Shown here piece after piece: positions 845-52,452 of a stretch of DNA of 64,000 nt. The translations under genes and the position numbers were made by a program. The stretch covers positions 148,175,523 through 148,239,522 of the forward strand of contig NC_068982.1 of assembly GCF_001194135.2 (NCBI RefSeq), in the 5' to 3' direction. The stretch is from Octopus bimaculoides (Eukaryota). The notes beneath the pieces were generated by a model that did no database searches, was not told the origin of the DNA, and saw nothing but the letters and a program-made list of their open reading frames with translations. Each line of letters starts with the position of its first letter. Position 1 is the stretch's first letter.

Positions 845-964
845 CGGTTGCTATATATCGCACAAAAGATCTCCTTCCTCTTCTTTCACACATGTAATAC
901 GAGCAAGGTCTATTTGAGTTTACTTTTGATCCATATTTCCAGCAAACCCCGTTCATCAAGCAAC
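845..964 (-). CDS. Gene 1 module exon (type A): GCLMNGVCWKYGSKVNSNRPCSYYMCERRGRRSFVRYIAT(G)
   Basis: Acceptor ttcttttaacttacag|GT TGC, donor ACC G|gtaggt. 120 bp, phase 1-1, open frame, 4 Cys; paralogous to exons at 35381, 61700 and 63613. Confidence 0.9.
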
Positions 965-6350: not shown

Positions 6351-6375
6351 AGATTAATTATGTAAAAATACTTAC

Positions 6376-6435
6376 CCTTCATCCTGAAATTATTGCTCGA
6401 TCCAAAAGGTACATTAACCGTACACTGTTTTGTCA
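6376..6435 (-). CDS. Gene 1 short one-Cys exon (type B): (V)TKQCTVNVPFGSSNNFRMK(G)
   Basis: Acceptor tatatttttgcag|TG, donor AAG G|gtaagt. 60 bp, phase 1-1; paralog at 36355-36417 with alignable flanks. Confidence 0.85.
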
Positions 6436-6976
6436 CTGCAAAAATATAAAGAGTTGGGAAACACTGGTCTCATTATATCATTTAAATAACATTTTTATGC
6501 TTAAACACATTTATTTATACTTAACATTATTTCATTTCAATATTCTTTCTAATTTTAGCATAAGGCCAGAAATTGGCTGGGAGCGGGGAAGTTGATTAAA
6601 ATGGCCTTAGTACTGAACCGATACTGATTTTATCGGAAACGAAACGGAGATGGGCAAAATTTATTTCGGCTGTATTTGAACGCAGAATGTAAATTGCTGT
6701 AAGAAGAATTTCAATATCGATAACTCTTACAATGTAGAGGTGTTTACGTAGATCGTAAAAGAACAGTCACAACATTCCCATATGAAATATTAATTTCGAG
6801 TGACCTCCTTTAAAATTTCCATTTTATAGGAAAGGTGTAAATGTAAAGTTATGATATTTAACTGCTCCCACGATTATAAGAATTATTAGTGAAATCAGCT
6901 CGAGTTTTCAAGGTAGAATTAGGGAGAAAAATTTACACGTTAGCACCAATATTCTCTTATATCCCCTCTCTATCTG

Positions 6977-11877: not shown

Positions 11878-11938
11878 CTTGCGAAAATGCTTGTATGTAC
11901 ACTATACAAAAACTGCTTAAAAGCAGAAAATACCTCAT
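11878..11938 (-). CDS. Gene 1 signal-peptide exon: MRYFLLLSSFCIVYIQAFSQ(G/V)
   Basis: Acceptor aattatttcag|GAAAAAC ATG, donor CAA G|gtaagt. 61 coding nt with a hydrophobic core; 54/61 nt identical to 38350-38410. Confidence 0.9.
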
Positions 11939-14175: not shown

Positions 14176-14997
14176 CATGTGCATACGTACACAGTCTGTT
14201 TATTGATCCATTTCTGCTTCTTTGTATCTGCTGCAGATACTTTTTCTTGACCTGTATGAATGTGTGTGTATGCGTTTGTATGTGTGTGTGTGTGTGTGTG
14301 TGTTTGTGTGTGTGTGCGTGTGTATGCGTGTGTGTGTGTGTGTCGGTGTTTTAAGCGAGAGGACACACAAAAAACATAGTAAGTGTGAAAATACTGTCAA
14401 AATTTAGCTGCTTTCACAGTAATACGAGCATTACATGACATTAATCATAACAAAATCTTCGTTTATATAAATAAATGTCATTGTTGTGAAGGATCAATTT
14501 GAATATTTTGCGCTTTTGCTTTACATTTTCCACAAATATTCAATATTTTGATTTCTACGAAAGAAGTTTCTGAGAAAAATTCCTTTCTCAACCCACCCCA
14601 ACCATCCACACACTCACTCACTCACTCAGTCATTGTTCTCTTAAGGGTGAAGAACTTTGAAAAAAAAATAGAATGAGAAACTACGGTAGCATCCACAGAT
14701 TTTTGACACTTTCCAGTATAACATTTATTTTCATGTCTAATCTTGTTTCTACCATCTTTGTATCTTTATATCGATTTGTACAATTTAAAAAATATTTTTC
14801 AACGAAAATATATAAAATAATCACTGTTCGTGAATTCTAATTTGAATTCTATCATGCAAGATAAAAATGAAGTTGGTTTGTGATATAACGGAAATAACTT
14901 TTCTCTGAGAATTGATTCAATATTTCGAAACTGATTATCGCTTTATGTTCATTGATTTAATCAGCAGGCTAAAGATTTGGTAAATAACTAAACAACA

Positions 14998-21438: not shown

Positions 21439-22580
21439 TACGAAGTAGTATTAAAAAGTTCCCGGACTAATTCTGCTGCGCACCAACAGATGGCAGTAGA
21501 CGGCTGTGTGCGCAATAAGACCTAGCGGGAACCTTGATGGGGCATTGTGTCAAGTGACATCGCTGTGTTTACTTCCTAACTTGTGAAAGTTGTGCTTTTC
21601 TAACCACGTGTATGCTGTAGTCTGCAACTTTTGTCATGGACAATAAGTTGGAGCAAAGAGTCAACGTGAAAGTTTACATTAAGCTTAGACATTGAGCATG
21701 CTTCGGCAAGCTTACAGCGACGAGGCAATTGGTTGTACGCAATGTTTCGAGTGGTACGGGCGCTTCAAAAACAGAAGATCCTTGGAAAGCGATGAGCGAT
21801 CTGGAAAACCTGTCACGAGCTTCACCCCCAGAAATGTGGAGAAAATTCACCAGCTTGTGCATGAGGACCGTCGGAGGACAATCAAAGACATTGCTAATGA
21901 TGTTGGCATATCGTATAGGTCCATGCAGGCAATATTAACGTCTGGATTCTTCACCCCGTCACCGAGTTTTCCTGTCACGGAACTTTCCTCATTCGTGAGT
22001 TTCGGTGCCATGTCTTTTTGTCAAACGTCTTTTCGTCCGACGTCTGTTTTTCCGATGATTTTTTTTGTTCAACGACAAATCCTATCAATAAAATTGTCAA
22101 TGATTATTTGATTTTGATGTTCACCTTGTTTTCTAAAGGGTTTATTTAAAATTGGACAAGAATTCTTTGGACAAAAAATCATCGGACAAAATGACTTCGG
22201 ACCAAAAGACGTAGACGAAGTGACATTGAACAAAGTGACATCGGACGAAAAGTTGGGTCACGGTGACGTTCTCGCTAAAAACGTGGTATCGCTTCCGCAT
22301 CCGCTCTATCCGCCGGATTTAACGCCTGCGGACTTCTATCTCTTCCTCAAGATGAAAAGGCAGCTCAAAGGTGTTGATACCGTTCTGAAGATCAAGAGCG
22401 AATCGCAGAAGGTCACGACTAGCTTACAGAAAACGACTTCCTGGTCGGATTTCAAAAGTAACAGGAGCGCGGGGACTGGTGTATTGCTGAGCAATTTCGA
22501 AGGAGATAATATTAAAACTTAGGTAAATAAATAATTTTTTTATTAAGCATAACTAGTCCGGGAACTCTTTGGAACTTCCG
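21439..22580 (+). mobile_element. Internally deleted mariner transposon
   Basis: TIRs aaaaagttcccggact / agtccgggaactcttt. HTH region FEWYGRFKNRRSLESDERSGKP and catalytic-end HPLYPPDLTPADFYLF. Confidence 0.85.
21951..22266. mobile_element. MITE with subterminal repeats nested in the mariner
   Basis: Ends ccgtcaccgagttttcc / gaaaagttgggtcacgg, with repeated tttcgtccg- and cggacgaaa-like units on opposite arms. Confidence 0.65.
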
Positions 22581-23491: not shown

Positions 23492-23513
23492 TTTATTTTC
23501 AATATAATTTATT
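23492..23513 (-). terminator. Tandem AATAAA polyadenylation signals of gene 2 (putative)
   Basis: Two tttatt on the + strand (23492, 23508), conserved in an alignable block at 47118 and 47134 behind gene 3. Confidence 0.55.
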
Positions 23514-24185
23514 AAGCATTGATGATATTTTCACAACTATAAAAATATAAAAATAACAAGTTAAGTGTGTTGTTTCCTACAGAAATAAATTGGTTAGGTG
23601 TGTTGTTATCTTTCGCTTATACACTTATTGACTGAACATTGCACACTCACATTTTGGTCATTTGAAACTACGTAAAGCGGACCCAATTGTTTCATGCACA
23701 GTTCTTTAAGAAGTTATTATCATGCTACGAAGATTATTGCAGTTGTCATTTTATTTTAAATAACATTTAATGAAACAACTAAATTCACAATAACTCTATG
23801 TACTGATATGAATTAGAAGCATCTCGAAGTATGTAAACAAAATCGAACACACATGCACAAGGTGTGTGTGCTTTTAGTTCGTGCGTTGGCTGCATTTAAG
23901 GCTTAAGGGAAAATATTCTCAATGCGCTAGGTGTTTTTACTTTCAGGTGTTTTGAACACCTGGCGCATTGAGAATGTATTCCCTAGCAGCCGAACTACGA
24001 ACTAACGACACACCCTGTGTATATGCGTTCGATTTTGTCTATGTCCTGAATACTCATACATATCTTCAATCCTCGTTTTAATTTACGTTCACGCGCTCCG
24101 TGTATATTTTAAAACTGGTGTTAACTTGATTATTTGGACTCGTACCTATCTCTAGGTTCAAATATGGTGCATCAACGTTTTCATA

Positions 24186-24193
24186 TTAGCAAC
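24186..24193 (-). CDS. Gene 2 terminal coding exon: (G)C-stop, then 3' UTR
   Basis: Strong acceptor tttcttttcttttatctctctag|GT TGC TAA; paralogous to 47580-47590, and the downstream UTR is alignable. Confidence 0.8.
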
Positions 24194-25728
24194 CTAGAGA
24201 GATAAAAGAAAAGAAATAAAACATACTATTAATAATTGACAGTGAAATAGAGACTTCGGTTCAAACAATCAAATGTATGGCATGAAATGAATTAAATCAC
24301 ATATTAATGTAAAATATTCTTTTTTTTATTTTTGTAAAATGAAAATAAAACAAAAACTTATCTATAGTTCTATCAAGAACAGAAATGCGTGAGTAAGAAT
24401 CTTAACAAAGTCAAGCATAACATTAACACGTCATTAGTAATTTGTGAGTTATGCTCGGATAAGATAGCAATGAAAACTTCTCACTAACTATGTATCATCA
24501 TTATGTTAATATTTCATCTTCGCAAGGCGTCGCCTTGGCAGAATCGTTAGCACGTCGGGCGAAATGCTTAGCGGTATTTCGTTCTGAGTTCAAATTCCGC
24601 CGAGGTCGACTTTGCCTTTCATCCTTTCGGGGTCGATAAATTAAGTACCAGTTACGCACTGAGGTCGATGTAATCGACTTAATTCCGTTGCCTGCCCTTT
24701 ATTGTCCCCTCTATGTTTAGCCCCTTGTGGGTAATAAAGAGACAAGAATCGTTAGTACGCCGAGTAAAATGCTTAGCGGTGTTTTGTCCATTTTAAAGAT
24801 CTGAGTTCAAATTCTGCCAGAGTCAACTTTGCCTCCTTTTTTTTCCAGCTCAGTAAAACAAGTATGATTTGAGTATTGGAGTTGATGTAAGCGACTCACT
24901 CGCGTCCCCGAAAATTTCTGGCTTTGAACCAAAATTCGAAACCAACATTTCCTCTAGATTTGGGATCATCATGCAAACAAATCCAAATACTCGAATTATT
25001 GAAAATGTAAGTATTAGTGAAGTACTTCATTCATCATAATACTGAATATTTTTTTCTAGTCTAGGCACAAGGCTCGAAATTTTGGGGGAGGGGGCCAGTC
25101 GATTAGTACGACTCCAGTACGCAACTGGTACTTAATTTATCGACCACGAAAGATTTAACGGCAAAGTCGACCTCAGAGCAATTTTAACTCACAACGTTAA
25201 GACAGCCGTGCAACGTAAAGACAGTCGTACCAACGTTTCTACCAACTCACTACCTTCATAATACTGAATATTGATAAGGGACAGAAATTGATAAGCAGTT
25301 GTTAATTATTCAAAATATAGGTATGGATGATTCTACATTATATTTAAAAAGATTTGTTGGTTTAAAAAAAAAATGGATTTGCTTTTCCTTCGTCAGTATG
25401 CTTCAGATTAAACAGACAACAGTATATAAAGTTACCATGTTTGCAATTATCACAAAGACGTCTTTTTTTTTAATGCCTTATGACCATAAAATATTTTAGT
25501 GGTGAAGAGCATTATCTTAATGCATTTTCATTGAATATTGAATGACAGGCATATAGGTACTTGCAAAATGAAATTAATAAGGGAACGAGGTTAATGTAAG
25601 TGATTTCCAGTCTTTAATATCCTATCCAAAATCAGAGCACTTTAAATCGAAGAAAGGCTCATCTAACATCCTTGCTGTTAGAAACAAATTACAAACATAA
25701 TGCGCTAAAGTAATCCATTTCGTCATAT

Positions 25729-26626
25729 ATGTATTTTGATCAATAAGTATCCGGACTGTTGCTATAGTAACAAGGCTAAAGCACAGAGAGTAAAGCTGCT
25801 TAGCAAAAATTGACCGTGAACTCTGCTGTACATGCGCACTAAGTTTTAACGTTTTAGTTCACTTCTGCTGTTTACAGAAGTGCTTGGAAACAAAGTGTGT
25901 ACCATGTGATCGTCGCATTGAGCATGACAGAGAAAGTTGAGCAAAGAATTTACATCAAATTTTGTCAAAATCTTGGCGATACCTGTTCAGAGGCCTACAC
26001 AAAGTTTTCAAAACGTTCTCATCGTTCTACACACAATCAAGAAGATATTGCGCAACTGAAACCCGAATGTGCTTTTGTTCAACTGAAAGCAGTTTTGGCA
26101 CAAACTTGGCAGACACGCATCTCATACCCAAATCTTCAGGGATAATGGACTGGACTGAACCATAACTAATCTGCACATCCTCTGATAACTCACGGATGGT
26201 GATTCGACGATTTTCCCTCACAGCTACACACAGTTCTGCGATGTTTTTCTCAGTTGTGCTGGTTGCTGGTCTCCCAGGACGTTCGTTAATAACGATATTT
26301 TTTCGGCCATCTTGGAAATGTCTGAACCACTCGTACACTTGTGTGCTACTTATTCACTCCCCTTCATACACTTTCTGCAACCTTGCGTAAGCCTCTGAGC
26401 ATGTATCGGCATGACAACTTTCCCTGTCATGGTCAATGTGACGATCAAATGCTACACACCTTCCTTCCAAGCACTGCTTCAAACAGTGGAAGTGAGCTAG
26501 AACGTTAAGACTTAGTGTGCGTGCACAGCAGAGTTCAAGTTCAATCTGTGCCAAGTGGGTTTACTCTGCGTACTTTAGCTTTGTTACTATGTCAACAGTC
26601 CAGATACTTATTGATCAGACCTTGTA
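25729..26626. mobile_element. Palindromic mariner derivative made of two inverted 5' halves
   Basis: TIR tgatcaataagtatccggactg / cagtccagatacttattgatca. Transposase N-terminus on + (MTEKVEQRIYIKFC) and on - (YEWFRHFQDGRK...RITIRELSE). Confidence 0.8.
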
Positions 26627-26877
26627 TGTGTAAAACATAAAATTTTTGATGCACTGATAAATTCTCAGATAAATTAAACGGTCAATTTGTTTATACGAAT
26701 TAAAGATATAAATAAATAAACAATATAATTTATTTTTCAGCGTGTGCCGGGAATACTTTAAGAAACCATTAAACAGTTTGCTCAACCTTAACGTAAGAGA
26801 CATTCAGTTGCTTGCATTTTACAAATAATGACGTTATAATGATTATATTTTCTTTATTATTTCTTGTCTATATATCT

Positions 26878-27192
26878 ATGGTGGAGGCGCAATGGCCCAG
26901 TGGTTAGGGCAGCGGACTCGCGGTCATAGGATCGCGGTTTCGATTCTCAGACCGGGCGTTGTGAGTGTTTATTGAGCGAAAACACTTAACGCTCCACGAG
27001 GTTCTGGCAGGGGATGGTGGCGAACCCTGCTGTACTCTTCCACCACAACTTTCTCTCACACTTTCTTCTTGTTTCTGTTGTACCTGTATTTCAAAGGGCC
27101 AGCCTTATCACTGTGTCACGCTGAATATCCCCGAGAAGTACGTTAAGTGTACACGTGTCTGTGGAGTGCTCAGCCACTTTCACGTTAATTTC
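26878..27192 (+). mobile_element. tRNA-derived SINE running into an assembly gap
   Basis: ggaggcgcaatggcccagtggttagggcagcggactcgcgg...ggtttcgattc head. Confidence 0.75.
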
Positions 27193-27918
27193 NNNNNNNN
27201 NNNNNNNNNNNNNNNNNNNNNNNNNNNNNNNNNNNNNNNNNNNNNNNNNNNNNNNNNNNNNNNNNNNNNNNNNNNNNNNNNNNNNNNNNNNNNNNNNNNN
27301 NNNNNNNNNNNNNNNNNNNNNNNNNNNNNNNNNNNNNNNNNNNNNNNNNNNNNNNNNNNNNNNNNNNNNNNNNNNNNNNNNNNNNNNNNNNNNNNNNNNN
27401 NNNNNNNNNNNNNNNNNNNNNNNNNNNNNNNNNNNNNNNNNNNNNNNNNNNNNNNNNNNNNNNNNNNNNNNNNNNNNNNNNNNNNNNNNNNNNNNNNNNN
27501 NNNNNNNNNNNNNNNNNNNNNNNNNNNNNNNNNNNNNNNNNNNNNNNNNNNNNNNNNNNNNNNNNNNNNNNNNNNNNNNNNNNNNNNNNNNNNNNNNNNN
27601 NNNNNNNNNNNNNNNNNNNNNNNNNNNNNNNNNNNNNNNNNNNNNNNNNNNNNNNNNNNNNNNNNNNNNNNNNNNNNNNNNNNNNNNNNNNNNNNNNNNN
27701 NNNNNNNNNNNNNNNNNNNNNNNNNNNNNNNNNNNNNNNNNNNNNNNNNNNNNNNNNNNNNNNNNNNNNNNNNNNNNNNNNNNNNNNNNNNNNNNNNNNN
27801 NNNNNNNNNNNNNNNNNNNNNNNNNNNNNNNNNNNNNNNNNNNNNNNNNNNNNNNNNNNNNNNNNNNNNNNNNNNNNNNNNNNNNNNNNNNNNNNNNNNN
27901 NNNNNNNNNNNNNNNNNN
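27193..27918. other. Assembly gap inside the last intron of gene 2
   Basis: Run of N; it could hide a further module exon. Confidence 0.95.
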
Positions 27919-28155
27919 GTCTTTATAAGAATTTATCAAGTAGCTAGCGTGAAAAAACCTCATAAGGGAAAAATCCATAATTTATTCCCTAAAATAAATT
28001 TATTTATATAAGGGCATTACATGAATGCCCCACGCTAAGAGGGACTCTAGGGTCAAAATACTATAATAAACACATTTATATATATATAACAAGTTTAATG
28101 AATATTGCTTAATTTTCTATTGGCATATCGACTGAGCATATGAATTTAAGCTTAC

Positions 28156-28275
28156 CGGCTGCTTCAGTGTAATGTCCAAATCCTTTCCCCATTCTGTCAC
28201 AAACACTCACAATACATCCATCTTCAGACTTTATTCTCGTTCCAGCTTCCTGACAACTACCGTTTATTCTGCAAC
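28156..28275 (-). CDS. Gene 2 module exon 5: GCRINGSCQEAGTRIKSEDGCIVSVCDRMGKGFGHYTEAA(G)
   Basis: ttttttcacttcaag|GT TGC ... GCC G|gtaagc; 120 bp, phase 1-1, 4 Cys. Confidence 0.9.
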
Positions 28276-29187
28276 CTTGAAGTGAAAAAACAAATTTGTT
28301 TCGTTGCATCAGTACCTGTATCTATGAAATGTATATTCAATTATTTCGACTAAATCACATTGTGTATTGTCAGTGTATTAAAACTATAAAATATTAACTA
28401 AACCTTCAAATATCAATCGTAGCATAAAACTTACATGTCGTATCGAAAGTAAGTTTGTTTTAATATATCGTTTCCTTACACATAATGAAAGTAAAAGTAA
28501 TACATTGACTTACAACTGTTTATAATATTGCATGAATAATTTGATTGAGCATTTTATTCAAAAGTTAGATTTTCTTATATATTTTAAATAGAAGTATCTC
28601 ATCAGGGCGCTTTATATGTTAGTACCATGTCATAGCAGTACTCTATTTGACAATGTGCACTATCACTTGAAATATAATGTAGGATATGTATTTTTAAAAA
28701 CATATTTTAATCTTGTTGTGAAAAGAATTCAAACTGAGCCATAGAGCCGAATTGTTACTAGTCACTGCCCTTTCTTTGTTGTATCGTTATTTAGCAGAAT
28801 TAGCATTTAAGAATGACCATTATAAATTGTGTTCATAATTTCTAACTGATCAAAATCAGATATCCTCAAAATAAATCAGATTATTGTAGGAGATTTTAGT
28901 ATATGAATCTGGCTATTTCTATTTTAGCGGAGACGTATTTGTTACCCCGAGAAAGTTTTTACGTATTATGTATTTTGAATGGTTAAGGCAAAGTACGATA
29001 GTTATGCCAAATTAAATTCTAAACGTTTTATAATTATTGAGTGAAATATATATCACGAAATAACATTCCGTTTTCAATATGAAATTGATTTTTGTTGGTG
29101 TATAACCTGTAATATTTTGTAGTTCATAAAATACATACCTGAGTATCTTATATAAGGGACATTTTATAAAAAGATTTACAAACTTAC

Positions 29188-29307
29188 CAGTGCGGTTAGT
29201 GTAAACTTGATATCCATTGTGGTCCATTTTACAAATTCTTACAGCACAAAGATTTTCTGAATATACTTTCTCTCCAACCTTCCGACAAGCACCGTCTATT
29301 AAACAAC
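29188..29307 (-). CDS. Gene 2 module exon 4: GCLIDGACRKVGEKVYSENLCAVRICKMDHNGYQVYTNRT(G)
   Basis: tttttttacatcaag|GT TGT ... ACT G|gtaagt; 120 bp, phase 1-1, 4 Cys. Confidence 0.9.
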
Positions 29308-30889
29308 CTTGATGTAAAAAAACAAATAGTTTTCTTTTATTTCAAGAAATGTGGATTGCCTCTTGTCAATATATTTATACCTAAGCAATATTAACAACTC
29401 TTCCAAAAACGAGTATTCCTTAAAGATTTTGTCACATTTCAAATATAATGCGTTAGTCAATAAAGTCATTCTACTAATTGTGATACTAAATATGCAAGGC
29501 ATTTTGCTAATGTTTAATGAAGGCAGAGGCAAAAGGATTTATTTATAGCTAATTAGAGATTGTTACATGATTAATTAAATAAACTATGGTATTCAAAATC
29601 AATTTTCTAATATACATCTTTGCTGAAAACGTCATATCAGAATTCTTTATGCGTTTGCAATGCGTCATAGTGTAATATAATTTGGAATATATTATATGAT
29701 ATACATTTTCAGATACCTATTTTAGTTTCCAAGTGAAAAGAAAATCAAGAAATTGCAGTATACAATTTTGTTTCACATTTTATCTCTCCCTAGTCAGAAG
29801 ATATGGTATCAATATGACTAATTTTAATGATTACTCAGTGGTTACTTAATGAGTACTTTATAATTGCTTAAAACTTACCTAAAAATGAAAACACATAATG
29901 AGTTCATAGGAATATTTATAAAATGTGCAGAAACAAGTCTTAAACCTAGCTGCTGAGTCAAATTTCAAACGCTGGCAACGTGTAATGATTCGTTTATTCC
30001 TAAGACAGTACACAGTGTTGGCGGGTAGATTGAATTATAATGTGTGATACACTTTTTTTGTTAAATATACAATGATATACCCGTTCAGGCAATCAAACAA
30101 ATCTGATCGATCAGATTAATTTCTACTACAGTCTCTTAGATCGAAACCCCCTACTCTCCAATCGAAACTCAAGATGTAAGAACAATTCTATGTGAATCTC
30201 GATCTTGAACAATGCAGATTATCATAAAATTAATTACAATATTACACTCGAAATTAATTCAAAGAAATGATTTAGATAGAAGATTCAGATTAAGCATCTT
30301 ATAGTAATTACTATCGTCACTTTGCGCTTAAACTTCAAATCGAGCTGGAACTATTGTGATTACCCTGACAAACAAGTCTACAATATATTTATCAATGATC
30401 CAAGTTTTGATTCCGTCGTTTATAAATTGTCTCTTGAAAAAAATAAATTCGATGATTATCACATTTCTATTGTCTAAAATATTTGATGTCTTTCACATTT
30501 CCATTTGCCAAAATATATTCTTCTGAAATAGTGTTTTTCCAAACTTCTGACAAAAATAATATAATAGTGTTGTTGTTAATTAAAACTAAAGATACACTGA
30601 GGTTTAAAGAATGATTAGTAGTGATCATGACACGCGCTTTTTATTTTCATCCATTCAACGATCCCCTTCACCGATTTATTAATAGAGAAGACAATACATA
30701 CAATATTACAACATTCAATTTGTGCATTTCAACCTCAATACATGCGTATTGTTATTATAACAAAATTATTCAAGGAAAGCGTTTTTGAAATTAATAGATA
30801 TTGTTAAGACATTTATACTTGTTATTTTAATTTAAATATTGAATGCAGTTGAACATTTTCAACAACAAGTATCAATATCTGAAACTTAC

Positions 30890-31012
30890 CGTCAAGTTTT
30901 CCTCGCCATCCAATATACGATGGATACATATGTGTGCAAAGTATAGAATAACAAGGGTCCCTTGTTTGTATTTTCGTGCCAACACTGTGACATATACGAT
31001 TTAGTAAACAAC
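30890..31012 (-). CDS. Gene 2 module exon 3: GCLLNRICHSVGTKIQTRDPCYSILCTHMYPSYIGWRGKLD(G)
   Basis: ttcttgtttgtag|GT TGT ... GAC G|gtaagt; 123 bp, phase 1-1, 4 Cys. Confidence 0.9.
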
Positions 31013-33034
31013 CTACAAACAAGAAAATAATTACGATAAATGTAGGAGAAACTTCTCAGTTATGTCAAGGTATTGTCTCCATAAGAAGACTAAGATATTT
31101 ACTCAGGTATGCACAGAGCAAAATTTCAGTGATGTTTACTTCATACATACATACATACATACATACATACATGTGTGTATGAGTGTGTATTAATGACCTA
31201 TGACATTGCTAACTGGATGGCTTCTCATAAATTATCCCAGGTATCGAAACTATAATGATGTTAAATAAAGTATAGGAATAAATATATCCCGAGTCTAGTT
31301 TTCTGGCTTATTACATATATTACAGCAATTATAATCTTATTTCATGTCAAACTATATAGAAAAATACAATCAGTTTGATAATTCCAGTACAATTTAATCA
31401 TTTGAAATAAATGTTGTTTCATTATATGGTCAAATTCATTGAAAAAAACGTGAAAATTTGATATAAACCACCCTAATGGTTATACATCTAATCATAATGT
31501 AATGCAATTTACAGTATTTAATTGCAGACGTTTCTCCAAGAAAATGTCTTTAAAAAATCAATCTGTGTCCTGCGTGCGAATTTGTGCCCATATTACATGA
31601 TTTAATTAACTAAAAGCATTTTTCCTGAATATGCACTGCTGAAATTGAGGTGCGACTAATATTCCTGAGCGTCTTTTACGCCATCAAATCTCTAAGAAAA
31701 CGAAAATCCTTGATAATTGTCAAAATATTCCTATTTCAAGATATAGAGAAGTTTTGCGATATTTGCAAAGCACATCAAATCTGTGTACAAATAAAGCAAT
31801 TAAACTACATTATACTTATTTCTATTATATTTGCCCAATATTCGAGTGGCTTTTTCAAAAAGTTTGCTACCTTATTGGTACCTCTTAAACTTACGTTATG
31901 TTAGCTTATGATATTTTAACAGAAGACTGGTGACTAATTATTTGCATCGAAGTTCTTCATCAATGTTCCACAATGAAAGAATAGTATAGACATGTATATA
32001 CATAACGCTATCTGTAGCAAAGTATTTCAGCATTAAACAATATTGTACATAAAATATCCTATGTATTATCAGTGAGTTACAATTAAATTATGGCGGAAAT
32101 CACCTGGCTCATAATAGCATTGAGTTATTATCGCCCATGCAAGCTTGGGTATATTGTATCAGTATGTTCTTATTTATGTATCTACACATTTTTTTATAAT
32201 GAAAACGCTTTATCATTCTTCATCAGAATTTATTTCTAAATAAATAATTGTTGAATTTAATCATACGTTTAAATCAGAAAATTCTGTTAGGAATCTAATA
32301 ACATCTGATTAAATTCACCTAAAATAAAAGGATTTTTTATTACTATTTAAGTAAGAGTATTGGAAAAATTCTTCATGGTAATCAATTATTAGTTACGGAT
32401 ATTACTTTCTTATTTTAAAAAAATATCGAAGCCAATTTAACATTTCGTTTCGTCGGAACCGATAAAATACATTATAGTCAAGCACTGAGTTCGTTTTAAT
32501 CAACTCTGCACGTCTTTATCTAGCTTATTGCATCATCTTTCATTTGTCGGAATAAATCACAACAGGAAGAGTAGTACTTAAAACACATTTAATCTAAATA
32601 CAAGAAACTGGCAACGTAAGAAAATTCATATGTATTACATTTCTGATAAATGTTGTGAATGTCAAAAGAAAATATTGAATCCCATACGTTACGTTAATAA
32701 AATAGAAAATAAAGTTTTATTTTAGAGAAGTATCACTATAAATGTATACATTTCACTTACTGCATATTGGTATTGTTGTTTAACTACTGGCAAACACTAA
32801 TCGAACATAATTATGATTAACGATATTGCAGTCCTTCATTTTTTATAAAATTGTAGTGTAGTTTTATTGAGGTATATCTGCCATTTCTACCTGGTTGAGC
32901 GAACGCACTACGTATTTTTGTCCCTAATTAGCTACGTATTTTATTGCTACGACGGTACTGAATAATAGATTTTACTCATATTTAATTATTCAATTATTAA
33001 ATTTTCAATAGAGTAAAAGAATATTTTAACCTAC

Positions 33035-33157
33035 CAGTATATGTCGCTCTCCACACATATCTTCCGTATGGGGTACGCATGCAGGTATGGTACATACATC
33101 TGCCTCTTTCTGTAATTCTCTGTCCTTCTTTATAACAAACACCATCCCGGTAACATC
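33035..33157 (-). CDS. Gene 2 module exon 2: GCYRDGVCYKEGQRITERGRCMYHTCMRTPYGRYVWRATYT(G)
   Basis: cgcaacttctag|GA TGT ... ACT G|gtaggt; 123 bp, phase 1-1, 4 Cys. Confidence 0.9.
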
Positions 33158-33417
33158 CTAGAAGTTGCGAATATACACAATTTGTTATTTTCAAAACTAT
33201 AGGTCAGGAAGAATAGAATTCTTTTCGAAAATAGCCCATATGCAATTCATGCAATTTCATTTACATCTAATTAAGATAGAAATACTTGTCTTGTTTTAAT
33301 GACAATGACCCAGCATAACCACACCAACGCCTTAAAATAAATCAAAGGGAGATTGAAATTCGCATCCATTAGGCAGCGTGTAGGTCGCACTCATCACATG
33401 TGCACAAAACTCCATAC

Positions 33418-33458
<41 letters not shown>

Positions 33459-33720
33459 TTTCATATACGTACATATAGAAATGTTGAGACTGAAAACCAT
33501 CCACTGCTGCAATGTGTAAAAACGAAGGGAAAATCATTTGAAAAAATGTGATATTTAATTTTATCATTAAATCTTAGCCTACTATAAATTGTATAGACCA
33601 ATTTCTAGTTAACTCAAGAAAATGTTCATAACACTACATGCAGTTTACAAAAAAAAAAAAAAGAATCGAGAGAACTTAGTTCAATGTTCCGACTGATTCT
33701 GAGATGCACTACCTCCTACA

Positions 33721-35036
33721 TACAAGATGGAACATAACGATCTCCCACATTTAAAGTGGGCACTGTGCAGGCTGTAATGGCGGTACAAAGGTGTCGGACT
33801 CATTCGGTAGGCTAGGCTCTACAATTTTCATTCTTTTTCATCAATTATTTTAGCAATTTCTCTATCAATGATCATAACCTTTTCCTAATCACTTTCAGAA
33901 GGCATCACGTGTTGAACTGGTGAACATCATGGCTTTGTTGTTCAAGTGTATTTGAAAGCAACCGATCTGTAACAGTGACGCAACGAGCATTCCGCAGACG
34001 ATCGATAAACGATTTTGCTTTGGATTTCTAATCTTCAGGCAAGTGGACCCACACTGAAAAGAAAGTCACCTGGCAGACCCAGGACCGTTAGAACTCCAGA
34101 AAATGTAACAGCATTAAGAGCATCCATTCAACAATCACCAAAGTGTTCCGCTCGTAAGTATAGCATAGCACTAGGGATATCAAGTCGGAGTCTGAGGAGG
34201 ATTCTGCATGCCGGTCTGAAACTGCATTATTACAAAATGATGTTGGTTCAAGAATTAACTGAGGCAGATCATATCAACCACAGAGCCGTATTTGTGAATA
34301 TTCTTGCAAAAGTTCCAACTGTAACTGTTCCTCTGAGTACCGATGTTACTTACTTCCATACCAATGGGATCAACATACTCCTCATGGACTCCACCAACGA
34401 CCGCGTCACTCTCCTTGCGTAACTGTTTGGTGTGCAGTGGCCGACTTTGATGTGATCGGCCTGTGCTTTTTTGAAGGTGGGGAAACAATAACTGTTACTT
34501 CCGGCCGATACATTAAAATGTTGGAGGCTTTTCTGCACCCTAAACTGGGCGATTTGGATAAGAACATGTGTGGTTTCAACAGGACAGGGCCACGGTTCAC
34601 GCAGCCAGACGTTTGTTCGGAGTGTTGAAGGAAATGCTTCCTGGTCGTTTTATCTCTTTAAGTGGGTACGTGGGGTTGCCGGCAAGTCCACCAGATTTAA
34701 GCCTTTGTGAGTTTTCCATTTGGGGATACCTAAAGGAAAAGGCTTTCTGACATCGTCCTCGTACTCTTAAAGATTCGAAGGAAAGAGTCAGAGGAAATCG
34801 ACGTATTTCAACCTGAGATGAGGCGGAGATTCATGCAGAACTTCTGTGAACGACTCCATTAATATATTGCCAACAAAGGCTGCTATTTGTTTAGTATAAT
34901 TTTTAAACCCCTCTAAAACAAAACTATATTTTATTTGCTTTTAGAACTATAACCAGCTTTCTTCTGAATAGTTGTGTTCTTTTTTTTTATATATATTTCC
35001 ATTCAAAATGTGGGATATATTTATGTCCACCCTGTA
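33721..35036 (+). mobile_element. Near full-length decayed maT/DD37D-like transposon in an intron of gene 2
   Basis: Ends tacaagatggaacata...cccacatt / aatgtggga...tatgtccaccctgta. Motifs PGRPRTVRTPENV, WFQQDRATVH and SPPDLSLCEFSIWGYLK, with frameshifts. Confidence 0.85.
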
Positions 35037-35380
35037 TAGCACGTTATTTAAATAATGAATATTGCTTTCAAATGTTGGCACGAAGCCAGCAGTTTTGGTG
35101 GAGGATTAAGTCGATTCCATCGACTCCAATGTTTAAGAGGTGCTTATCTTATCGACGCAGTCGACATCAGCGCAAGTTGAACTCAAAACGTTCAGACGGA
35201 CGAGACGCCGCTAAGAATTTTCCCCTAGTATAATAACGATTCTACCAGCTTACAAGCTTACATCTAAAGGATGACTATTGCTTGTAATATTTATTTTCTT
35301 GATATATTAATGTATTGTTGCAAGTTCTGGCATGCGTTTTATAATATAGTTTTTGGAAGATAAAGTCCGTACAAACCTAC

Positions 35381-35500
35381 CGGTTACTTTATGTCGCACG
35401 TAACATCCATGTCCTCTTCTTTCAGAAATATAAGTCATACAGAATGGAGTTGCTTCTACTTTTCTTCCATATTTCACACAAACGCCACGTATCAAGCAAC
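35381..35500 (-). CDS. Gene 2 module exon 1 (type A): GCLIRGVCVKYGRKVEATPFCMTYISERRGHGCYVRHKVT(G)
   Basis: tctttcaactcatag|GT TGC ... ACC G|gtaggt; 120 bp; counterpart of 845-964. Confidence 0.9.
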
Positions 35501-35582
35501 CTATGAGTTGAAAGAAAATTAATACATTTTGTTTATATCAGAAACTCTTTATGAAATACATCATTATATTTAAAACACTACA

Positions 35583-35725
35583 AATGGTTGAAGCTTTTCA
35601 TGTGATGCAAACTTACTAAGTTTAAAGTTGATATTGAAACAAGAATCATCACTGAAGGTGACACTCATCTTTCTACATATGGTTATTGATATTAACTCAT
35701 TTAATATAAATTAACAATGAGTATA

Positions 35726-35770
<45 letters not shown>

Positions 35771-35865
35771 AGTAGAAAGATGACCGTCACCTTCAGTCAC
35801 AATTCTTCTTTCAATACCAGCTTTAAACTTAGTAAGTTTGTGTCACATGAAAAGCTTCAACCATT
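35583..35865. repeat. Inverted repeat (about 94-bp arms) around a (TA)n core
   Basis: aatggttgaagcttttcatgtg...catctttctac is mirrored by gtagaaagatg...cacatgaaaagcttcaaccatt. Confidence 0.85.
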
Positions 35866-36354
35866 TCTCAGGCCTACATGGTTGAGTGTTAAATTATATT
35901 TACTCCACACACACACACACACACACACCTTCGCTCATGTGTGAGCCAGTTATATATTTACTTGTATGTGTGTGTGTGTGCGTGTATAATTACACACACA
36001 CACACACATTTATCATTGTATTTTGTACGTCTGTATAGTATACAATAGTACATTATCCATTCAAAAATAATAATTACACAAATGTTCATATGTTCCAAAC
36101 AGCACAGACGAAGTCGAAGTATAAAAGTTTCGAACAGCACCTAGCACTTTCTTCAATATAATATCACAAATTGTTAATCTCTAATTTTGCTAGGTCTCAT
36201 TATCTGTTCATTTACATTTAATCATACAATCGTTGATGCTGTCATGGTTTATAGGGTATAGATTATAGATATAATTTCTTCCAGAGTAAAAGAGAGCCAA
36301 ATATGTAGCAAAATAAAGAAATATGATGAAGACTAAATATGTTAAAATATTTAC

Positions 36355-36417
36355 CTTCCTCTAAGATATAATATTTCGATCCAAGAGGTATTTTCTGCTG
36401 ACACGGTTTTGTTATCC
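36355..36417 (-). CDS. Gene 2 short one-Cys exon (type B): (G)ITKPCQQKIPLGSKYYILEE(G)
   Basis: tacatttttgcag|GG ATA ... GAA G|gtaaat; 63 bp, phase 1-1; paralog of 6376-6435. Confidence 0.85.
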
Positions 36418-36888
36418 CTGCAAAAATGTAAATATAACTTGTGTTATAAAAATATAACACTAGTTCTCGTTATATTCTTTCTGCTATAGACACAATGCCT
36501 GACATTTTCTGGTAGGTGGCTCGTTGATTATATCTACCTCGGAACTTATCTCGTGCTCATTTTATCGAGCCCGAAAGGATGGAAAACAAACATGATTTCG
36601 ACGAGATTTGAAAATAATGTAAATATCCAGAAGAATTTATTCCGGTATTGATAACTCTAGTACAGTGTAGAGGTGTTGACATAATCTTTGACAGAACAGT
36701 GATCCGATATTAAAATGAAATATTAATTTCGAATGAGCTCCTGCAAAATTTCTATATTATGCGAGTATAAATATGGATTTGTGGTGTTTAACTACGCACA
36801 TCATTATTTGAATTACAGGTGAAATTAATTCAAATATTCAAGGCAAAATCAAGGGGAAAATTGTCACGCTAGAGCTGATATTCTCTGA

Positions 36889-36943
<55 letters not shown>

Positions 36944-36956
36944 AGAAATATATATA

Positions 36957-36995
<39 letters not shown>

Positions 36996-38349
36996 GTGTA
37001 TGTATATGTGTGTATGTGTATCTGTGTGTGTATGAGCAATGAAAGCACACTGTTGACAATTCCCAGATGAGACTGTGCAGTCCAATGTTCTAGCTTTGCT
37101 TTGTTCATGGGGCAGTTATCTACCCTGTCAGTTTATATGAATGTGCTTTTTCGCAACTATAAGTAGTTTAACTCTTGCTTCTAGCAATATATGTGCTTTA
37201 CAGTACGTTGCATCAGTGCATTGTTCATCTTTTTGTAGCAGTTTGTAGATGAAACTTATTAGTATCTAGTTTGTACATCCAATGCATTGGAGGAGATATT
37301 TTCAGCAGGCACCATTCAGCACTCTCACACATACACTTACGCAAGCTTTCTTATGCACATACACCATTTTTTTTTGTTTGTTTGTGATAAACTCTTTAAA
37401 TTTCCCATACTATTATAGAGTAACTGGACGATTACATCATCTTAAAGCATACATTCTATTTTGGGTTGAAGGTGGCGAGCTGGCAGAAACGTAAGCACGC
37501 CGGACGAAATGCCTATCGGTATTTCGTCTGTTTTTACGTTCTGAGTTCAAATTCCGCCGAGGTCGACTTTGCCTTTCATCCTTTCAGGGTCAATAAATTA
37601 AGTACCCCTCCCCAAAAATTTCGGGCGTTGTGCCTAGAGTAGAAAAGAATATCCTGACATTTGCAGTATACATAATATCATGATTGACAATAATTTAATG
37701 ATATGGTAAAGTATTAGAAATTAGAAGAGTTCTGAAGCTAGTTACAGGTTAAAGAGAATTTAAATGTTCAAAAAGAGACAACTAGAAAGATGAATCCCAT
37801 TTCCCTCAAAAAGAGAAAAAAAACCATCTTATTTACTTAGAGATCAAGTAACATATTTCCTCAGCATTTTCTGGGTTTCACTATTTCAAAGTTAATGTAA
37901 GAAGGTGAGTTGGTAAGGCGGTGAGCTGGCAGAAACGTTAGCACGCCGGGCGAAATGCTTAGTGGTATTTCGTCTACCGCTAAGTTCTGAGTTCAAATTC
38001 CGACGAGGTCAACTTTGCCTTTCATATTTTCAGGGTCGATAAATAAAGTACCAGTTACGCACTGAGATCGTTGTAATCGACTTAATCCCTTTGTCTGTCC
38101 TTTCTTTTTCCCCTCTATGTGGGCAATAAAGAAATAAGAAACGTTATTAGCATTTTTCCCGTCTTTGTGAGTTCAAATGCTTTCCCTTTCAGGGTTGTTA
38201 AAATAAGTACTATCTGGTCATTGGGGTCTATATAATTGACTTGCTCCTCTCCCGAAATTGCTGGCCTCCAACAAAATTTGAAAACAATGACACTCTTCAT
38301 AGATTAATGCTATTATGGAGGAATACATAGCAGGCTAGACGTTACTCAC

Positions 38350-38410
38350 CTTGCGAAGTTGCTTGTTTGTACGTTATACAAAAACTGATTAAAAGCAGAA
38401 AATATCTCAT
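38350..38410 (-). CDS. Gene 2 signal-peptide exon: MRYFLLLISFCITYKQATSQ(G)
   Basis: aattgtttcag|GAAAAAT ATG ... CAA G|gtgagt; 61 coding nt. Confidence 0.9.
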
Positions 38411-39945
38411 ATTTTTCCTGAAACAATTACAATAAAAGTACAAACGAGTTAAAATAAATTTATGTATATTAATGGCTCAATCAAAAGAAGAGCAATGCAT
38501 TTCAATATTTCTTTCCTGGTATTCGAAATGAAGAAAGAAACGAGATGATTAAATTGTCGTTATAAAACTGTAGACCTGATCCGATTCTCTGCAACATAGT
38601 AGGAGTAGAGACTATTCCAACAGCAATATTAAATAAATACTTGTTTCATATAACTAAATAAAATCCTATCATTTAATGGAAATAAAAAATAAAAATGAAA
38701 AATGTGAAATTTGGACTAAAGGTTCACACAGTGCTACATTGGATAACGCATTAAGCTTACCCAGTTACCACTAGTGGAAAATGATTGTCCTTTCACCGAA
38801 AATTTACACGAATTCCTTCAACTTAATTACACGTATAAGTCTTGCTACCAACCATAACTATAGTTGAACATGCACTCTCAGTCTCCATTACTGTGGGGTT
38901 CAACGCGTTACTAGAAAATCCTTAAACGCACGATTACATTTACGCCAACTATTCAGTTATTAGAAGAAAATGATAGCACAATGAAATAACAGGACATGTA
39001 ATTCAAGGAATAAAATTCACAGAAGTACATATTTTTAGAATGCGCCTATAATCTATATGGCATTATCAATTAAATTTAAATAGATTTCATGTAACTAAAT
39101 AATATAGCGTAATTTAATTTTTAAAAAAATAAACTGAAAAACAGAGTACATCATTTCAAAGGATTTTAAAGTTATTCCCTCTCCCTTTCAATGTAACTCT
39201 ATAAAAATATATAATATATATTATATATGCATATAATCTGTCTATCTATCTATCTATCTAACAATCTATCTATCTGTCTGTCTGTTTGTCTGTCTGTCTC
39301 TATGTCTGTCTGTCTTTCTGTCTATCTGTCTGTCTATCTGTCTGTCTGTCTGTCTGTCTTATATTATTTTATGGCATGTTATATTTCTAATGTAAATAAA
39401 ATGTTAGTTTGTCAATTGTATTTCTCTATTTCATTTAATATTTGTATATATATATATATATATAAAGTTGTGTGTGTGAGTGTGTGAGTATGTCTGTGTG
39501 TATTTATATGCATATTCTTTAGTCATTTGACTGCGGCCATGCTGGAGCACCGCCCTAAAGGATTTTAGTCGGAGAAATCTCCCCCCACGCCAGGACTTAT
39601 TCTTTGTGAGCTTAGTATATATCTTATGTGTATATAAATATATATATATATATNNNNNNNNNNNNNNNNNNNNNNNNNNNNNATACGCATGCATGCATAC
39701 GTTTATATATATATACATATATATATATACACACACACATATTAACACATACATCATACATACGCATGCATGCATACGTTTATATATATATACATATATA
39801 TATATACACAAACACACACACACACATATAATAATCGAAACGGCGTCAGTTCTGTAATAAATGTATTTAAAATAAGATTTGGATAGATGCAGGTTTCTAC
39901 AGTATGAGAATGTAGACGTAGAAAGCAATGAAAATGAAAACTCAC

Positions 39946-40041
39946 AGATGTAATTTGAGTCGTAAATACGCACTCACACTCATATATACACTTCTAGTGG
40001 CGATTGATTATATTCGATTACGTCATTCAATCGTATATAAG
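39946..40041 (-). promoter_or_regulatory. Gene 2 putative core promoter and non-coding first exon
   Basis: CTTATATACG...TCAATC (+1 ~40005)...TTACATCT|gtgagt; same TATA-to-Inr spacing as gene 1. Confidence 0.65.
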
Positions 40042-47579: not shown

Positions 47580-47590
47580 TTAAGAACAAC
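47580..47590 (-). CDS. Gene 3 terminal coding exon: (G)CS-stop
   Basis: tttcttttctttaactatctag|GT TGT TCT TAA. The 3' UTR (47100-47580) aligns with 23480-24185. Confidence 0.8.
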
Positions 47591-48796: not shown

Positions 48797-50689
48797 AAAG
48801 AAAGAAAATCGAGAACAATGAATGTATGAATAATTTATTTGTATATAAAGATGTTGATATTTTTAAAAAACATAACAGTAAAAATAAATTATAACTTGGA
48901 AAGCTAAAAAAATGTGAAAAACCTACATATATGTTTCAGTTCTAAACCCTAGTTGGTATGCAATTCTAAGAATTTGGTTATATGCTAAGAAAGGTATAAT
49001 TGTTTGTCTGTGTGGGGTAGAACTTCTTCAAGGTCATGTGCTTATCCGTGGATCTAACTTCTTCGAATTGACTGTATATATATATAATATGTGTGTGTGC
49101 GAGAAAGAGAGAGAACAAAATATATATGCATATATAATGAAATAAACTACTAGCTGCAATTTGAGAATAATAAATATTACTTAATATTGCATTAATGGAT
49201 CAAAACAGTTTGATGCAAATTCATTTGTACTCCGAATTTCAAACGTCGTGCTAATCTTAAGTCATTGAGAATTCCCAACGGCTACAGATTAGCATCACTC
49301 GGAGTACCAACGAATTTGAATCAAACTGTTTTGATTCGTACATATAACTTCCAGTAAATGTGTCGAGTACCCTTCTTTCGGTTGTCCAGTCACTCTATAA
49401 TATTGAATTAAGTAATTTAAAGGTCTCGAACAGTATGTACTTCCTTTATTAAATAAAACACTTGAAAATTCCGGTGCTCACCCTTATATTTAGTTTCGAG
49501 GATAGCCCCAAACCGTATTTTTCGACAATATAAATCAAAACAATTGAATCGCTTTCTTGTTCCAACGGGTAAACACTGATCATTTATTGGACAACCTGCC
49601 AGAATAAAAAAAGTAGTTTATTTTTAAATCAGTTATTGCTTCTGTGAAATATAAAGTTTTATTTTCGTTTTCTTAGATATATACATTATGCATTCGTAAA
49701 CAATTAAATAATAATCGATAGTTGATTGATTGATTTCTTCACTCATGCATTACATCACATAGAGAGAAAGTTTGAAGAGTAAAAGAGAGGTGCAGAGAAA
49801 GTTACAGTAAGAGGTGCAGAATGAGTGCTTAGATGGAGGAATAAGACATGAGTGCTAAATACACAGTGAGAGAGAAAAGTTCATACAGACAGCAGTAGGA
49901 AATAAGTAAATGACAAAGTAGTTATGGAAAATACATGCATGCATGTGTGAAACGAAATACGTCAGTTACTGCATACTACAGACCAACAGTTTAAAATAAT
50001 TTAAATTATGGTACGCATACATATACATGAAGTGTATATACTTTAGTAAACAAGTACTTAGGAAAAATAATTTAGAATTTATTCCATAGTTCATATCCAA
50101 AATGTAAATGAACAATCAAATGCAAAATTATTCACTGTGTTCATTTTATATAATGAAAATTTACCCACACAGTATATATATATATATGTATATATACTAA
50201 CACACATACAGGATTTAAATTCGATAATCTGACAAACTTGTATAGCATGCTGTGTATTGCCAAGCAATCTTTCAGGTTCAAACATGCAACATGGTTGGTC
50301 TTTTTTGAAAAAAAGTAAAGGAAGCCAGTTTGTTGGAAAACACGAAAATGTACCTTAGTCTTTCAGAAAAATTTTGTAGTTCTGTAGAGTTCTTAGATCT
50401 AAAAAGTATGAGATTTTTCGGCTAAACAAAACCTGCATTTCTTTGATTCATTAACCTATGGCGAGGATCGTTCCATGATGCTCCACTTGATTGTATGTGG
50501 TGTACAGTTAGCCTTCAGATCCCAGATATTGCTAACTTCGTGGCTATAGTATTATTCACGATCGAAAAGAAGGCAAGTAGTTAGTGTATCTTTTGCTAAA
50601 ATTTGTTCTGCCAATGCACTTTTTTCTGTTGAGTTTCCGTATTCTGGAACGCTACTGTCACTTCAGCTTCATAAAACACTGAAATAATC

Positions 50690-51801: not shown

Positions 51802-52335
51802 GCTGAGAGAGGGGGAAAGAGAGAAAAGAAGCATGAATTTGGTATTCTTTTATTTCATCTGTTACACGTTTTTGAGTTCGATTATTTAAGATGTATTATA
51901 AAAGCAATTTACAAAGGCCTTTTAATCACTCCGGTTATGTCTTCAGGTCAGGTATTTATATAAGATGGTTGGATGTCTATGATTCGATGTTTGGTATGAT
52001 TAGGTGCTCTTTGCAAATTGCATTTATAATACATTCATAATTGAAAACTGAAACTTATGTAACAGATTAAATAAAGGAACAACAGAACACCAAATTCGGG
52101 CTTCATGTCTTTCTCTCCTTATATATTGCTTAATTATTTGTCAGGGCTATCATGCAAGAATGACCAGAAAATTCTTTATTTTGTATATGATTAGTAACTG
52201 ATGGAGATCAATAGATAAAAACGCATGACAAATAAAGTATTATTTTCTGTTAGTATATGAAGTACATATATTTTTGGCATGAATGTTTTAGCGTATTACA
52301 TGACAGACCTTCCTCCGAGTGATCTACAGGCTTAC

Positions 52336-52452
52336 CCATGAATTCTTTGAAAAAATTATATCCATTTTCGAGTTTCTTGCAAATTCCATAGCGACAGTGC
52401 TTGAGTTTGTATTTCTTTCCAGTTTTGTAACACACATTTTTATCTAAACAAC
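52336..52452 (-). CDS. Gene 3 module exon: GCLDKNVCYKTGKKYKLKHCRYGICKKLENGYNFFKEFM(G)
   Basis: tttttcccctcaaag|GT TGT ... ATG G|gtaagc; 117 bp, phase 1-1, 4 Cys. Confidence 0.9.

Follow-up and report, generated by a model that had tools for sequence, protein, structure and literature searches.

Fibronectin type I (FN1) modules carry their cysteines (Cys) in the spacing C-x~25-C-x-C-x~10-C, with bonds C1-C3 and C2-C4, and in vertebrate fibronectin each FN1 module is encoded by one phase-1 exon. An FN1-like beta fold is also found in the first subdomain of VWC, a domain with 8 to 10 Cys that include CxxCxC and CC motifs. In C. elegans, MIG-18 is a secreted basement-membrane cofactor of the ADAMTS protease MIG-17 (PMC4856095). 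Here, we describe a gene of Octopus bimaculoides, referred to as gene 2, whose product is a string of small Cys-rich modules. Gene 2 is located on the minus strand of a 64-kb stretch of O. bimaculoides DNA (contig NC_068982.1, positions 148,175,523 to 148,239,522), which we call the window, and we re-joined the eight pieces from which a first-pass annotation had assembled it. The explanation that best accounted for our results overall, with a probability of about 0.72, was that gene 2 is a real gene with a sixth module exon that very probably lies in an assembly gap and that its product is a secreted binding or matrix-associated protein built of FN1-like modules.

As the first-pass annotation had claimed, the eight pieces formed a 738-nt join in one open frame that ran from an ATG at 38410 to a TAA at 24186-24188 on the minus strand and encoded 245 amino acids (aa). 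In the rebuilt join, every exon at an internal junction was preceded by AG and followed by GT, all introns were in phase 1, and every module began with G/GT TGY (here and below, a slash within a sequence marks a splice junction). The exons contained no stop and no frameshift, and the splice sites were intact and conserved. Twelve runs of N were present in the window; the two that fell within the span of gene 2 (27193-27918 and 39654-39682) were both intronic in the model. The 22 Cys claimed for the mature protein were confirmed as well: one in a short N-terminal segment, four in each of the five modules, and one at the C-terminus. The modules were arranged in tandem and followed the family pattern GC-x5-C-x3-G-x8-C-x4-C, with ~40 aa and one exon, in phase 1 at both ends, for each module.

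The mature protein was preceded by a 20-aa hydrophobic leader, which was encoded by a separate exon and consisted of MR, then YFLLLISFCI, then TYKQATSQ, with A-x-S before residue 20. Judged by eye and no more, the leader looked like a signal peptide, as proposed earlier. It was conserved in the two paralogs of gene 2 (P0003 and P0004) and showed the features that were typical of the paralog family, namely, the sequence MR(Y/C)(F/L)LLL.S.C..., an exon of its own, and an end in ...SQ/ with a split Gly codon.

A protein search with gene 2 returned two matches: isoform X3 of O. sinensis LOC115232515 (P0001, XP_036354653.1; an uncharacterized protein of 261 aa, E = 5e-116) and an O. vulgaris prediction (P0002). 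Identity to the O. sinensis RefSeq model was 68% overall and ~83 to 93% in the shared modules. In blastn comparisons, the window from 41000 to 22000 was collinear with an O. vulgaris locus on OX597815.1 (L001), which placed gene 2 at the orthologous position. The seven larger exons of gene 2 were present in O. vulgaris with identical boundaries and conserved ag and gt dinucleotides, an agreement far greater than chance would produce, and nucleotide identity to O. vulgaris was 94.9% in the exons versus ~85 to 88% in the intron blocks. The ratio of non-synonymous to synonymous substitution rates (dN/dS) relative to O. vulgaris was 0.41 over 607 nt, with 19 non-synonymous and 12 synonymous changes. 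As judged from these comparisons, gene 2 is under purifying selection and is orthologous to O. sinensis LOC115232515 and to the O. vulgaris locus. The leader, the exon order and boundaries, and the terminal micro-exon were the same in gene 2 and its orthologs, in which the locus was also collinear. The orthologs differed from gene 2 in that they had a sixth module, which is either unread or lost in the window, and in that their exon 2 encoded one more Cys and their module 1 kept the canonical Cys. In the case of O. sinensis isoform X3, module 2 was also skipped, even though O. vulgaris has the corresponding exon.

In O. bimaculoides, gene 2 is a genuine protein-coding gene, and the eight exons, frames, and splice sites of the earlier model are correct. 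The O. bimaculoides gene model is new, and the kind of gene is known, as it is the ortholog of predicted, uncharacterized octopus proteins in a molluscan FN1-like repeat family.

The last coding exon of gene 2 was 8 nt long. The window sequence ag/GTTGCTAA aligned with ag/GTTGCTGA of O. vulgaris, and the surrounding block, which extended over the polypyrimidine tract, was 91% identical. The last module exon of O. vulgaris ends with ...ATA ATA C/gtacgt, in phase 1, and the O. sinensis protein XP_036354653.1 ends with ...EKIIRC, which requires a following exon that starts with GT TGY and a stop. A paralogous terminal micro-exon, ag/GTTGTTCTTAA, with a very similar upstream tract, was located at 47580-47590 in the neighboring gene 3, and all three octopus paralogs had a lone C-terminal Cys (RC, SCS, and QC). 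Thus, gene 2 had the terminal micro-exon of the family, which encodes a single last Cys and the stop. As indicated by these alignments, the 8-nt exon proposed in the first-pass annotation is real; given its O. vulgaris counterpart and the paralogous copy in gene 3, we rejected the idea that it was an artefact of that reading. The tandem AATAAA motifs reported 3' of gene 2 were also found and are candidate poly(A) signals.

At the other end of gene 2, the additional N-terminal residues of O. sinensis isoform X3 aligned to window positions ~39989-39946, where a strong donor follows, and the exon 1 acceptor was found 7 nt upstream of the ATG (ttcag/GAAAAATATG). An exon of the 5' untranslated region (UTR), exon 0, sits just downstream of TATA-like motifs (TATATA at 40055-40050 and TTATATAC at 40039-40032), and the smaller of the two gaps is in the intron after exon 0. 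Identity to O. vulgaris was 93% across the exon 0 region, with both the TATA-like GGTATATAGG and the donor included, and the TATA region suggested earlier was consistent with such a conserved upstream 5' exon. Exon 0 contained an in-frame ATG at 39983-39981 (minus strand) in a TG microsatellite, and its frame ran across the splice junction to the main open reading frame (ORF). Use of this ATG would prepend MSVSAYLRLKLHLKN (15 aa) to the N-terminus. However, the likely start of translation was MRYF..., because the upstream ATG lies in a microsatellite in which O. bimaculoides and O. vulgaris are set apart by a 4-nt indel and because its context is weaker (T at -3 versus A at -3 for the main ATG). 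We also observed a second upstream ATG in exon 0, at 40024-40026 (minus strand), that was followed by an immediate stop (ATGACGTAA).

The first-pass annotation had called the gene 2 model complete, with the caveat that the 726-bp gap in the last intron could hide another module. It now appears unlikely that the model was complete, since a sixth module exon of three other octopods maps to this run of N and since the 5'UTR exon and its intron had been left out; the caveat itself was favored by the evidence from the three octopods. In O. vulgaris, the sixth module exon is located at 25226-25345 of the locus, 432 bp after module 5, and encodes GCILNNKCYPPGWQHQESSCISFKCQSSYKEYYWEKII. O. sinensis and a third octopod also carried the exon, which was found ~430 bp past module 5 and before the terminal exon. 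A protein search with modules 5 and 6 led to the third octopod via an 86-aa ORF (P0026) on a Logan contig (L002); this contig was from a more distant octopod, was ~78 to 80% identical to both species, and had the same sixth-module exon and donor. Because the exon was present in O. vulgaris, O. sinensis, and the more distant octopod, sequence comparison indicates that it is ancestral and conserved.

Alignments of the window to O. vulgaris and to the third octopod both broke at 28079 and resumed at 26880, and ~580 bp of orthologous DNA that included the sixth module exon had no counterpart in the readable window. The interval between the two break points consisted of 167 bp of unmatched sequence, the 726 N, and a 312-bp repeat that resembled a short interspersed element (SINE). 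Searches of the rest of the readable window with tblastn, a regular expression, and the module hidden Markov model (HMM) on six frames did not detect a sixth module. These comparisons suggested that the sixth module exon is probably hidden in the gap. If so, it would be expected to read ag/GTTGTATTTTGAA...ATAATAC/gtacg, and the product would likely have ~285 aa and 26 mature Cys and end with ...IIRC. The exon is 120 nt long and in phase 1 at both ends, which means that the frame is kept with or without it; the 245-aa form would be an exon-skipped isoform, or the full product only if the sixth exon has been lost. The SINE-like repeat and the unmatched 167-bp stretch probably explain why the assembly broke at the gap. 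That stretch (27919-28085) matched neither O. vulgaris nor any other part of the window, and a tRNA scan of the repeat with ARAGORN called none.

The loss of the sixth exon was the most serious alternative for the structure of gene 2. According to this idea, the 245-aa protein with five modules is the true full-length product, the sixth exon was removed by a deletion, for instance when a rearrangement introduced the repeat, and module 5 is spliced straight to the terminal exon. Such a join is in frame and gives the ending ...EAAGC and a stop, and exon number differs among isoforms and paralogs. Moreover, both readable flanks of the gap were non-syntenic (the 167 bp without a match and the 312-bp repeat), and neither aligned to the O. 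vulgaris intron, so the module may have been lost rather than hidden. We nevertheless considered a deletion rather unlikely, given that the exon appeared to be ancestral and conserved, that the estimated 726 bp of the gap suffices for the missing ~580 bp, and that the remainder of gene 2 appeared to be under purifying selection. A decaying or unexpressed duplicate was a different possibility, and it would explain why the protein search of the database returned no O. bimaculoides protein that matched gene 2. The neighboring gene 1 does have an identical protein in the database, and the canonical fourth Cys of module 1 is gone in gene 2. However, the frames were open, the splice sites were intact and conserved, the exons were more conserved than the introns, and dN/dS was 0.41. 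Furthermore, the loss of Cys in module 1 was offset by a gain of Cys 7 residues on, and the module was still predicted to fold. Gene 2 appears to be unannotated in the searched protein collection, and the assembly gap alone could account for this. Thus, decay seemed very improbable, and a functional gene with a sixth exon in the gap remained our preferred reading.

The module fold was examined by structure prediction. An AlphaFold2 model of modules 4 and 5 of O. sinensis, a segment with 93% identity to the window, had a mean predicted local distance difference test score (pLDDT) of 95.6 with a 50-row alignment and showed five strands per module (residues 2-4, 7-9, 14-17, 22-29, and 32-39). The AlphaFold model of module 1 from the window (the translation of 35381..35500) had a pLDDT of 86.1 and the same five strands. 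When the two-module model was used in a Foldseek search, the best matches in the PDB were tandem FN1 pairs with template modeling (TM) scores of 0.49 to 0.59. These included fibronectin 2F1-3F1 (2cku; probability 0.98, E = 0.06) and 3cal_C (TM score of 0.59, root mean square deviation of 3.4 Å). The octopus module was thus predicted to be a five-strand beta unit in which an A-B hairpin stacks against a C-D-E sheet, and its fold appeared to be FN1/VWC-like.

In the model, strand A contained the first Cys and strand B the second, the third immediately preceded strand D, the fourth was part of strand D, and strand E had no Cys. The first Cys of the following module was already part of that module's strand A, and the final GC of the construct had lower confidence. 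The modeled modules looked self-contained, in a manner that matched the exon boundaries. Among 157 distinct family modules, the only single losses were of the second or the third Cys, and no paired losses were found. This pattern weakly suggests that a first-fourth bond is conserved and FN1-like and that a second-third bond was added. Module 1 of O. bimaculoides differed from O. vulgaris and both paralogs, which kept the canonical fourth-Cys site: the fourth Cys was replaced by Ser (TGT>TCT, residue 25), and a Ser located 7 residues on was replaced by Cys (TCT>TGT, residue 32). The first-pass annotation had noted that 22 is an even number and that full disulfide pairing is possible. The number stood, and its evenness was not conserved, as the O. 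vulgaris and O. sinensis orthologs gained an extra Cys in exon 2 and have an odd count. After pairing within modules, the exon 2 Cys and the C-terminal Cys of gene 2 would be left over, and these head and tail Cys could bond to one another or link molecules.

A profile of the 13 modules in the window was searched against 1.84 billion representative proteins and matched 18 proteins at E < 1e-3. The genuine matches that could be named were all molluscan, namely, the octopus paralogs and proteins from Babylonia, Patella, Lymnaea, Mytilus, Plakobranchus, and Ylistrum. Among the 18, at least P0015, P0017, and P0018 looked like unrelated repeat artefacts, and P0011 was a VWC2L-type protein. Many molluscan relatives contained up to ~25 copies of GC-x4-7-C-x3-G-x7-9-C-x4-C, sometimes after a VWA domain. 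Some Mytilus members were named by UniRef after the MIG-18-like fibronectin type I domain (PF23003), and distant molluscan relatives had sub-threshold matches to this domain, Fn1_2, of 16 to 21 bits versus a cut-off of 27. When 50 two-module segments of the family were scanned against Pfam at E <= 1, Fn1_2 was matched in 11 (best E = 9.7e-6), SVWC in 12, and VWC in 5. The single match in a sequence profile search of the PDB was weak and was to the VWF C-type domain 7p4n (E = 0.26). Literature searches on the LOC and accession numbers, on octopus Cys-rich tandem genes, and on MIG-18-like/PF23003 returned nothing on the octopus module family.

We infer that the gene 2 product would be secreted as a stiff, rod-like string of disulfide-stapled beta modules and, by analogy with the FN1 modules of fibronectin and MIG-18, that it would act extracellularly by binding partners or matrix. 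The number of modules may be adjustable by splicing, because all module exons are in phase 1 at both ends, such that skipping or adding one keeps the frame, and because O. sinensis isoform X3 lacks module 2. Alternatively, the product may serve as an effector, either in saliva or venom, in antimicrobial defense or immunity, or as a binder of BMP-type growth factors like VWC/SVWC proteins. In favor of such a role, the predicted protein is small, Cys-rich, and putatively secreted, and its family is tandemly duplicated and lineage-restricted. The sub-threshold SVWC and VWC matches of relatives and the weak match to 7p4n pointed in the same direction. In contrast, Pfam scans showed no similarity to toxin or antimicrobial families that are known, the VWC-defining CxxCxC and CC motifs were absent, a dN/dS of 0.41 was not the signature of a fast-evolving effector, and larger molluscan relatives joined the module to VWA domains, an architecture of the extracellular matrix. 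An effector role was therefore unlikely in our estimation, and we favored a binding or matrix-associated protein. A bolder reading would join these elements. In it, the module is an undescribed, mollusc-wide variant of the FN1-like fold in which the second disulfide moved from strands D-E to B-D, the octopus genes form a tandem cluster with a module number set by splicing, and the head Cys and the tail Cys, the latter encoded by its own micro-exon, link proteins end to end into disulfide-bonded chains. We offer this combination tentatively and consider it improbable as a whole.

Several of our results count against the preferred reading of gene 2. Its 245-aa model matched nothing in a Pfam scan other than a spurious HTH_39 at E = 0.16, with no fn1 or Fn1_2 match at E <= 10, and the octopus paralogs matched nothing in Pfam at E <= 0.1. 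In Foldseek, the FN1 assignment was below significance, given that the best E value was 0.06 and that no match had E <= 0.001, and a fold search with the single 41-residue module 1 gave only non-specific matches at E > 2. The disulfide pairing was deduced from strand positions only. Gene 2 is known here in O. bimaculoides from genomic sequence alone, and the protein models of the sister species are computational predictions. The visual call of the leader, the in-frame ATG in exon 0, the non-syntenic gap flanks, and the Cys layout that separates the module from canonical FN1 (described at the end) belong with these points.

The coordinates of gene 2 and of the surrounding features are listed in Table 1. 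Three paralogs form a head-to-tail cluster in which gene 2 is in the middle. In the case of gene 1, the signal exon, the one-Cys exon, and the first module matched O. bimaculoides XP_014771277.1 exactly, which identifies the window as O. bimaculoides, and the other five modules were beyond the window start. In O. sinensis, the ortholog of gene 3 is LOC115222431, and the signal exon of gene 3 was past the end of the window. Two gene 3 modules (61698-61820 and 58093-58218) are missing from O. sinensis isoform X2 and are therefore either additional exons or alternatively spliced ones. Like gene 2, LOC106869870 (gene 1) and LOC115222431 had a signal exon, a one-Cys segment, five to six modules that shared the Cys pattern, and a single Cys at the C-terminus, and the genes were adjacent and on the same strand. 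Unlike gene 2, they had different numbers of modules, and module identity was ~20 to 50%.

Table 1. Features of gene 2 and its neighbors in the window (slashes mark splice junctions)
Feature	Position	Strand	Remarks
Exon 0 (5'UTR)	39946..40030	-	3' end at 39946 firm, donor CATCT/GTGAGT; 5' end estimated from TATA-like motifs
Assembly gap	39654..39682		TA/TG microsatellite in the 5' intron; non-coding, coding sequence untouched
Exon 1	38350..38417	-	Acceptor ttcag/GAAAAAT, ATG at 38410; encodes MRYFLLLISFCITYKQATSQ and first base of Gly codon; 60/61 nt same in O. vulgaris
Exon 2, short N-terminal segment with one Cys	36355..36417	-	Encodes GITKPCQQKIPLGSKYYILEE
Module 1 exon	35381..35500	-	Canonical fourth Cys is Ser; new Cys 7 residues on
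Module 2 exon	33035..33157	-	Present in O. vulgaris genome; skipped in O. sinensis isoform X3
Module 3 exon	30890..31012	-	Boundaries kept in O. vulgaris
Module 4 exon	29188..29307	-	Boundaries kept in O. vulgaris
Module 5 exon	28156..28275	-	Boundaries kept in O. vulgaris
Assembly gap	27193..27918		726 bp (estimated), last intron; expected site of sixth module exon
SINE-like repeat adjoining gap	26881..27192		Absent at this site in O. vulgaris; copies elsewhere in O. vulgaris locus; tRNA-like box motifs by eye
Terminal exon, coding part	24186..24193	-	GTTGCTAA; completes split codon, then Cys and stop; 3'UTR continues downstream
Tandem AATAAA, candidate poly(A) signals	23513-23508 and 23497-23492	-	Further candidates at 23755 and 24082
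Gene 1, O. bimaculoides LOC106869870 (XP_014771277.1)	11879-11938, 6374-6436, 843-965	-	Signal exon, one-Cys exon, first module
Gene 3, terminal micro-exon	47580-47590	-	Reads GCS and stop
Gene 3, seven module exons	49480-49596, 52334-52453, 57710-57832, 58093-58218, 61698-61820, 62024-62146, 63611-63733	-	

Further observations were made in and around the cluster. Between genes 1 and 2, a weak module-like match (14697-14762, minus strand; E = 0.008; ...NKCYTGKC...) may be a decayed module exon. More module exons were found downstream of the gene 2 ortholog in O. vulgaris (55993-77359 of L001), including a run of very similar units (GCFYSG.CYL.GS...). Because of these further, very similar exons, the cluster appeared to be larger and locally amplified in O. 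vulgaris. Two plus-strand ORFs in the window had sub-threshold helix-turn-helix matches in Pfam (34015-34422, HTH_32, E = 6e-4; 21692-22111, HTH_10, E = 0.01). Both resembled transposase remnants, and the ORF at 34015-34422 was located in the intron between modules 1 and 2.

The present analysis adds a well-supported O. bimaculoides gene model in a region whose annotation seems to have been prevented by an assembly gap, and it indicates that an 8-nt coding exon, which is easily dismissed, is real and conserved. It also defines a compact module family that was restricted to molluscs in the search of 1.84 billion proteins, that has a confident predicted fold, and that is without a curated description. 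The finding bears on no long-standing question. If the head and tail Cys polymerize the proteins or if module number is tuned by splicing, the cluster would illustrate well how lineage-specific extracellular proteins are assembled from exon-shuffled disulfide modules.

Of the described systems, VWC and SVWC resemble the octopus family in the weak SVWC, VWC, and VWF 7p4n matches; the octopus module differs in having 4 Cys rather than 8 to 10, and the CxxCxC and CC motifs were found in none of the modules. The MIG-18-like Fn1_2 proteins (PF23003) are, as predicted for the octopus proteins, small secreted proteins made of FN1-like units; the octopus proteins had no direct PF23003 match. In the case of canonical FN1, the spacing of the octopus module is different (C-x5-C-x12-C-x4-C), with a Cys in strand B instead of strand E. 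Membership in the fibronectin type I family is not established, because neither the HMM thresholds nor the canonical Cys spacing was matched. The octopus module model nevertheless resembles the FN1 modules of human fibronectin (2F1-3F1, 2cku, and 3cal) in its size of ~40 residues, its predicted A-B hairpin and three-strand sheet, its two predicted disulfides per module, and its ~5-residue joins between modules.

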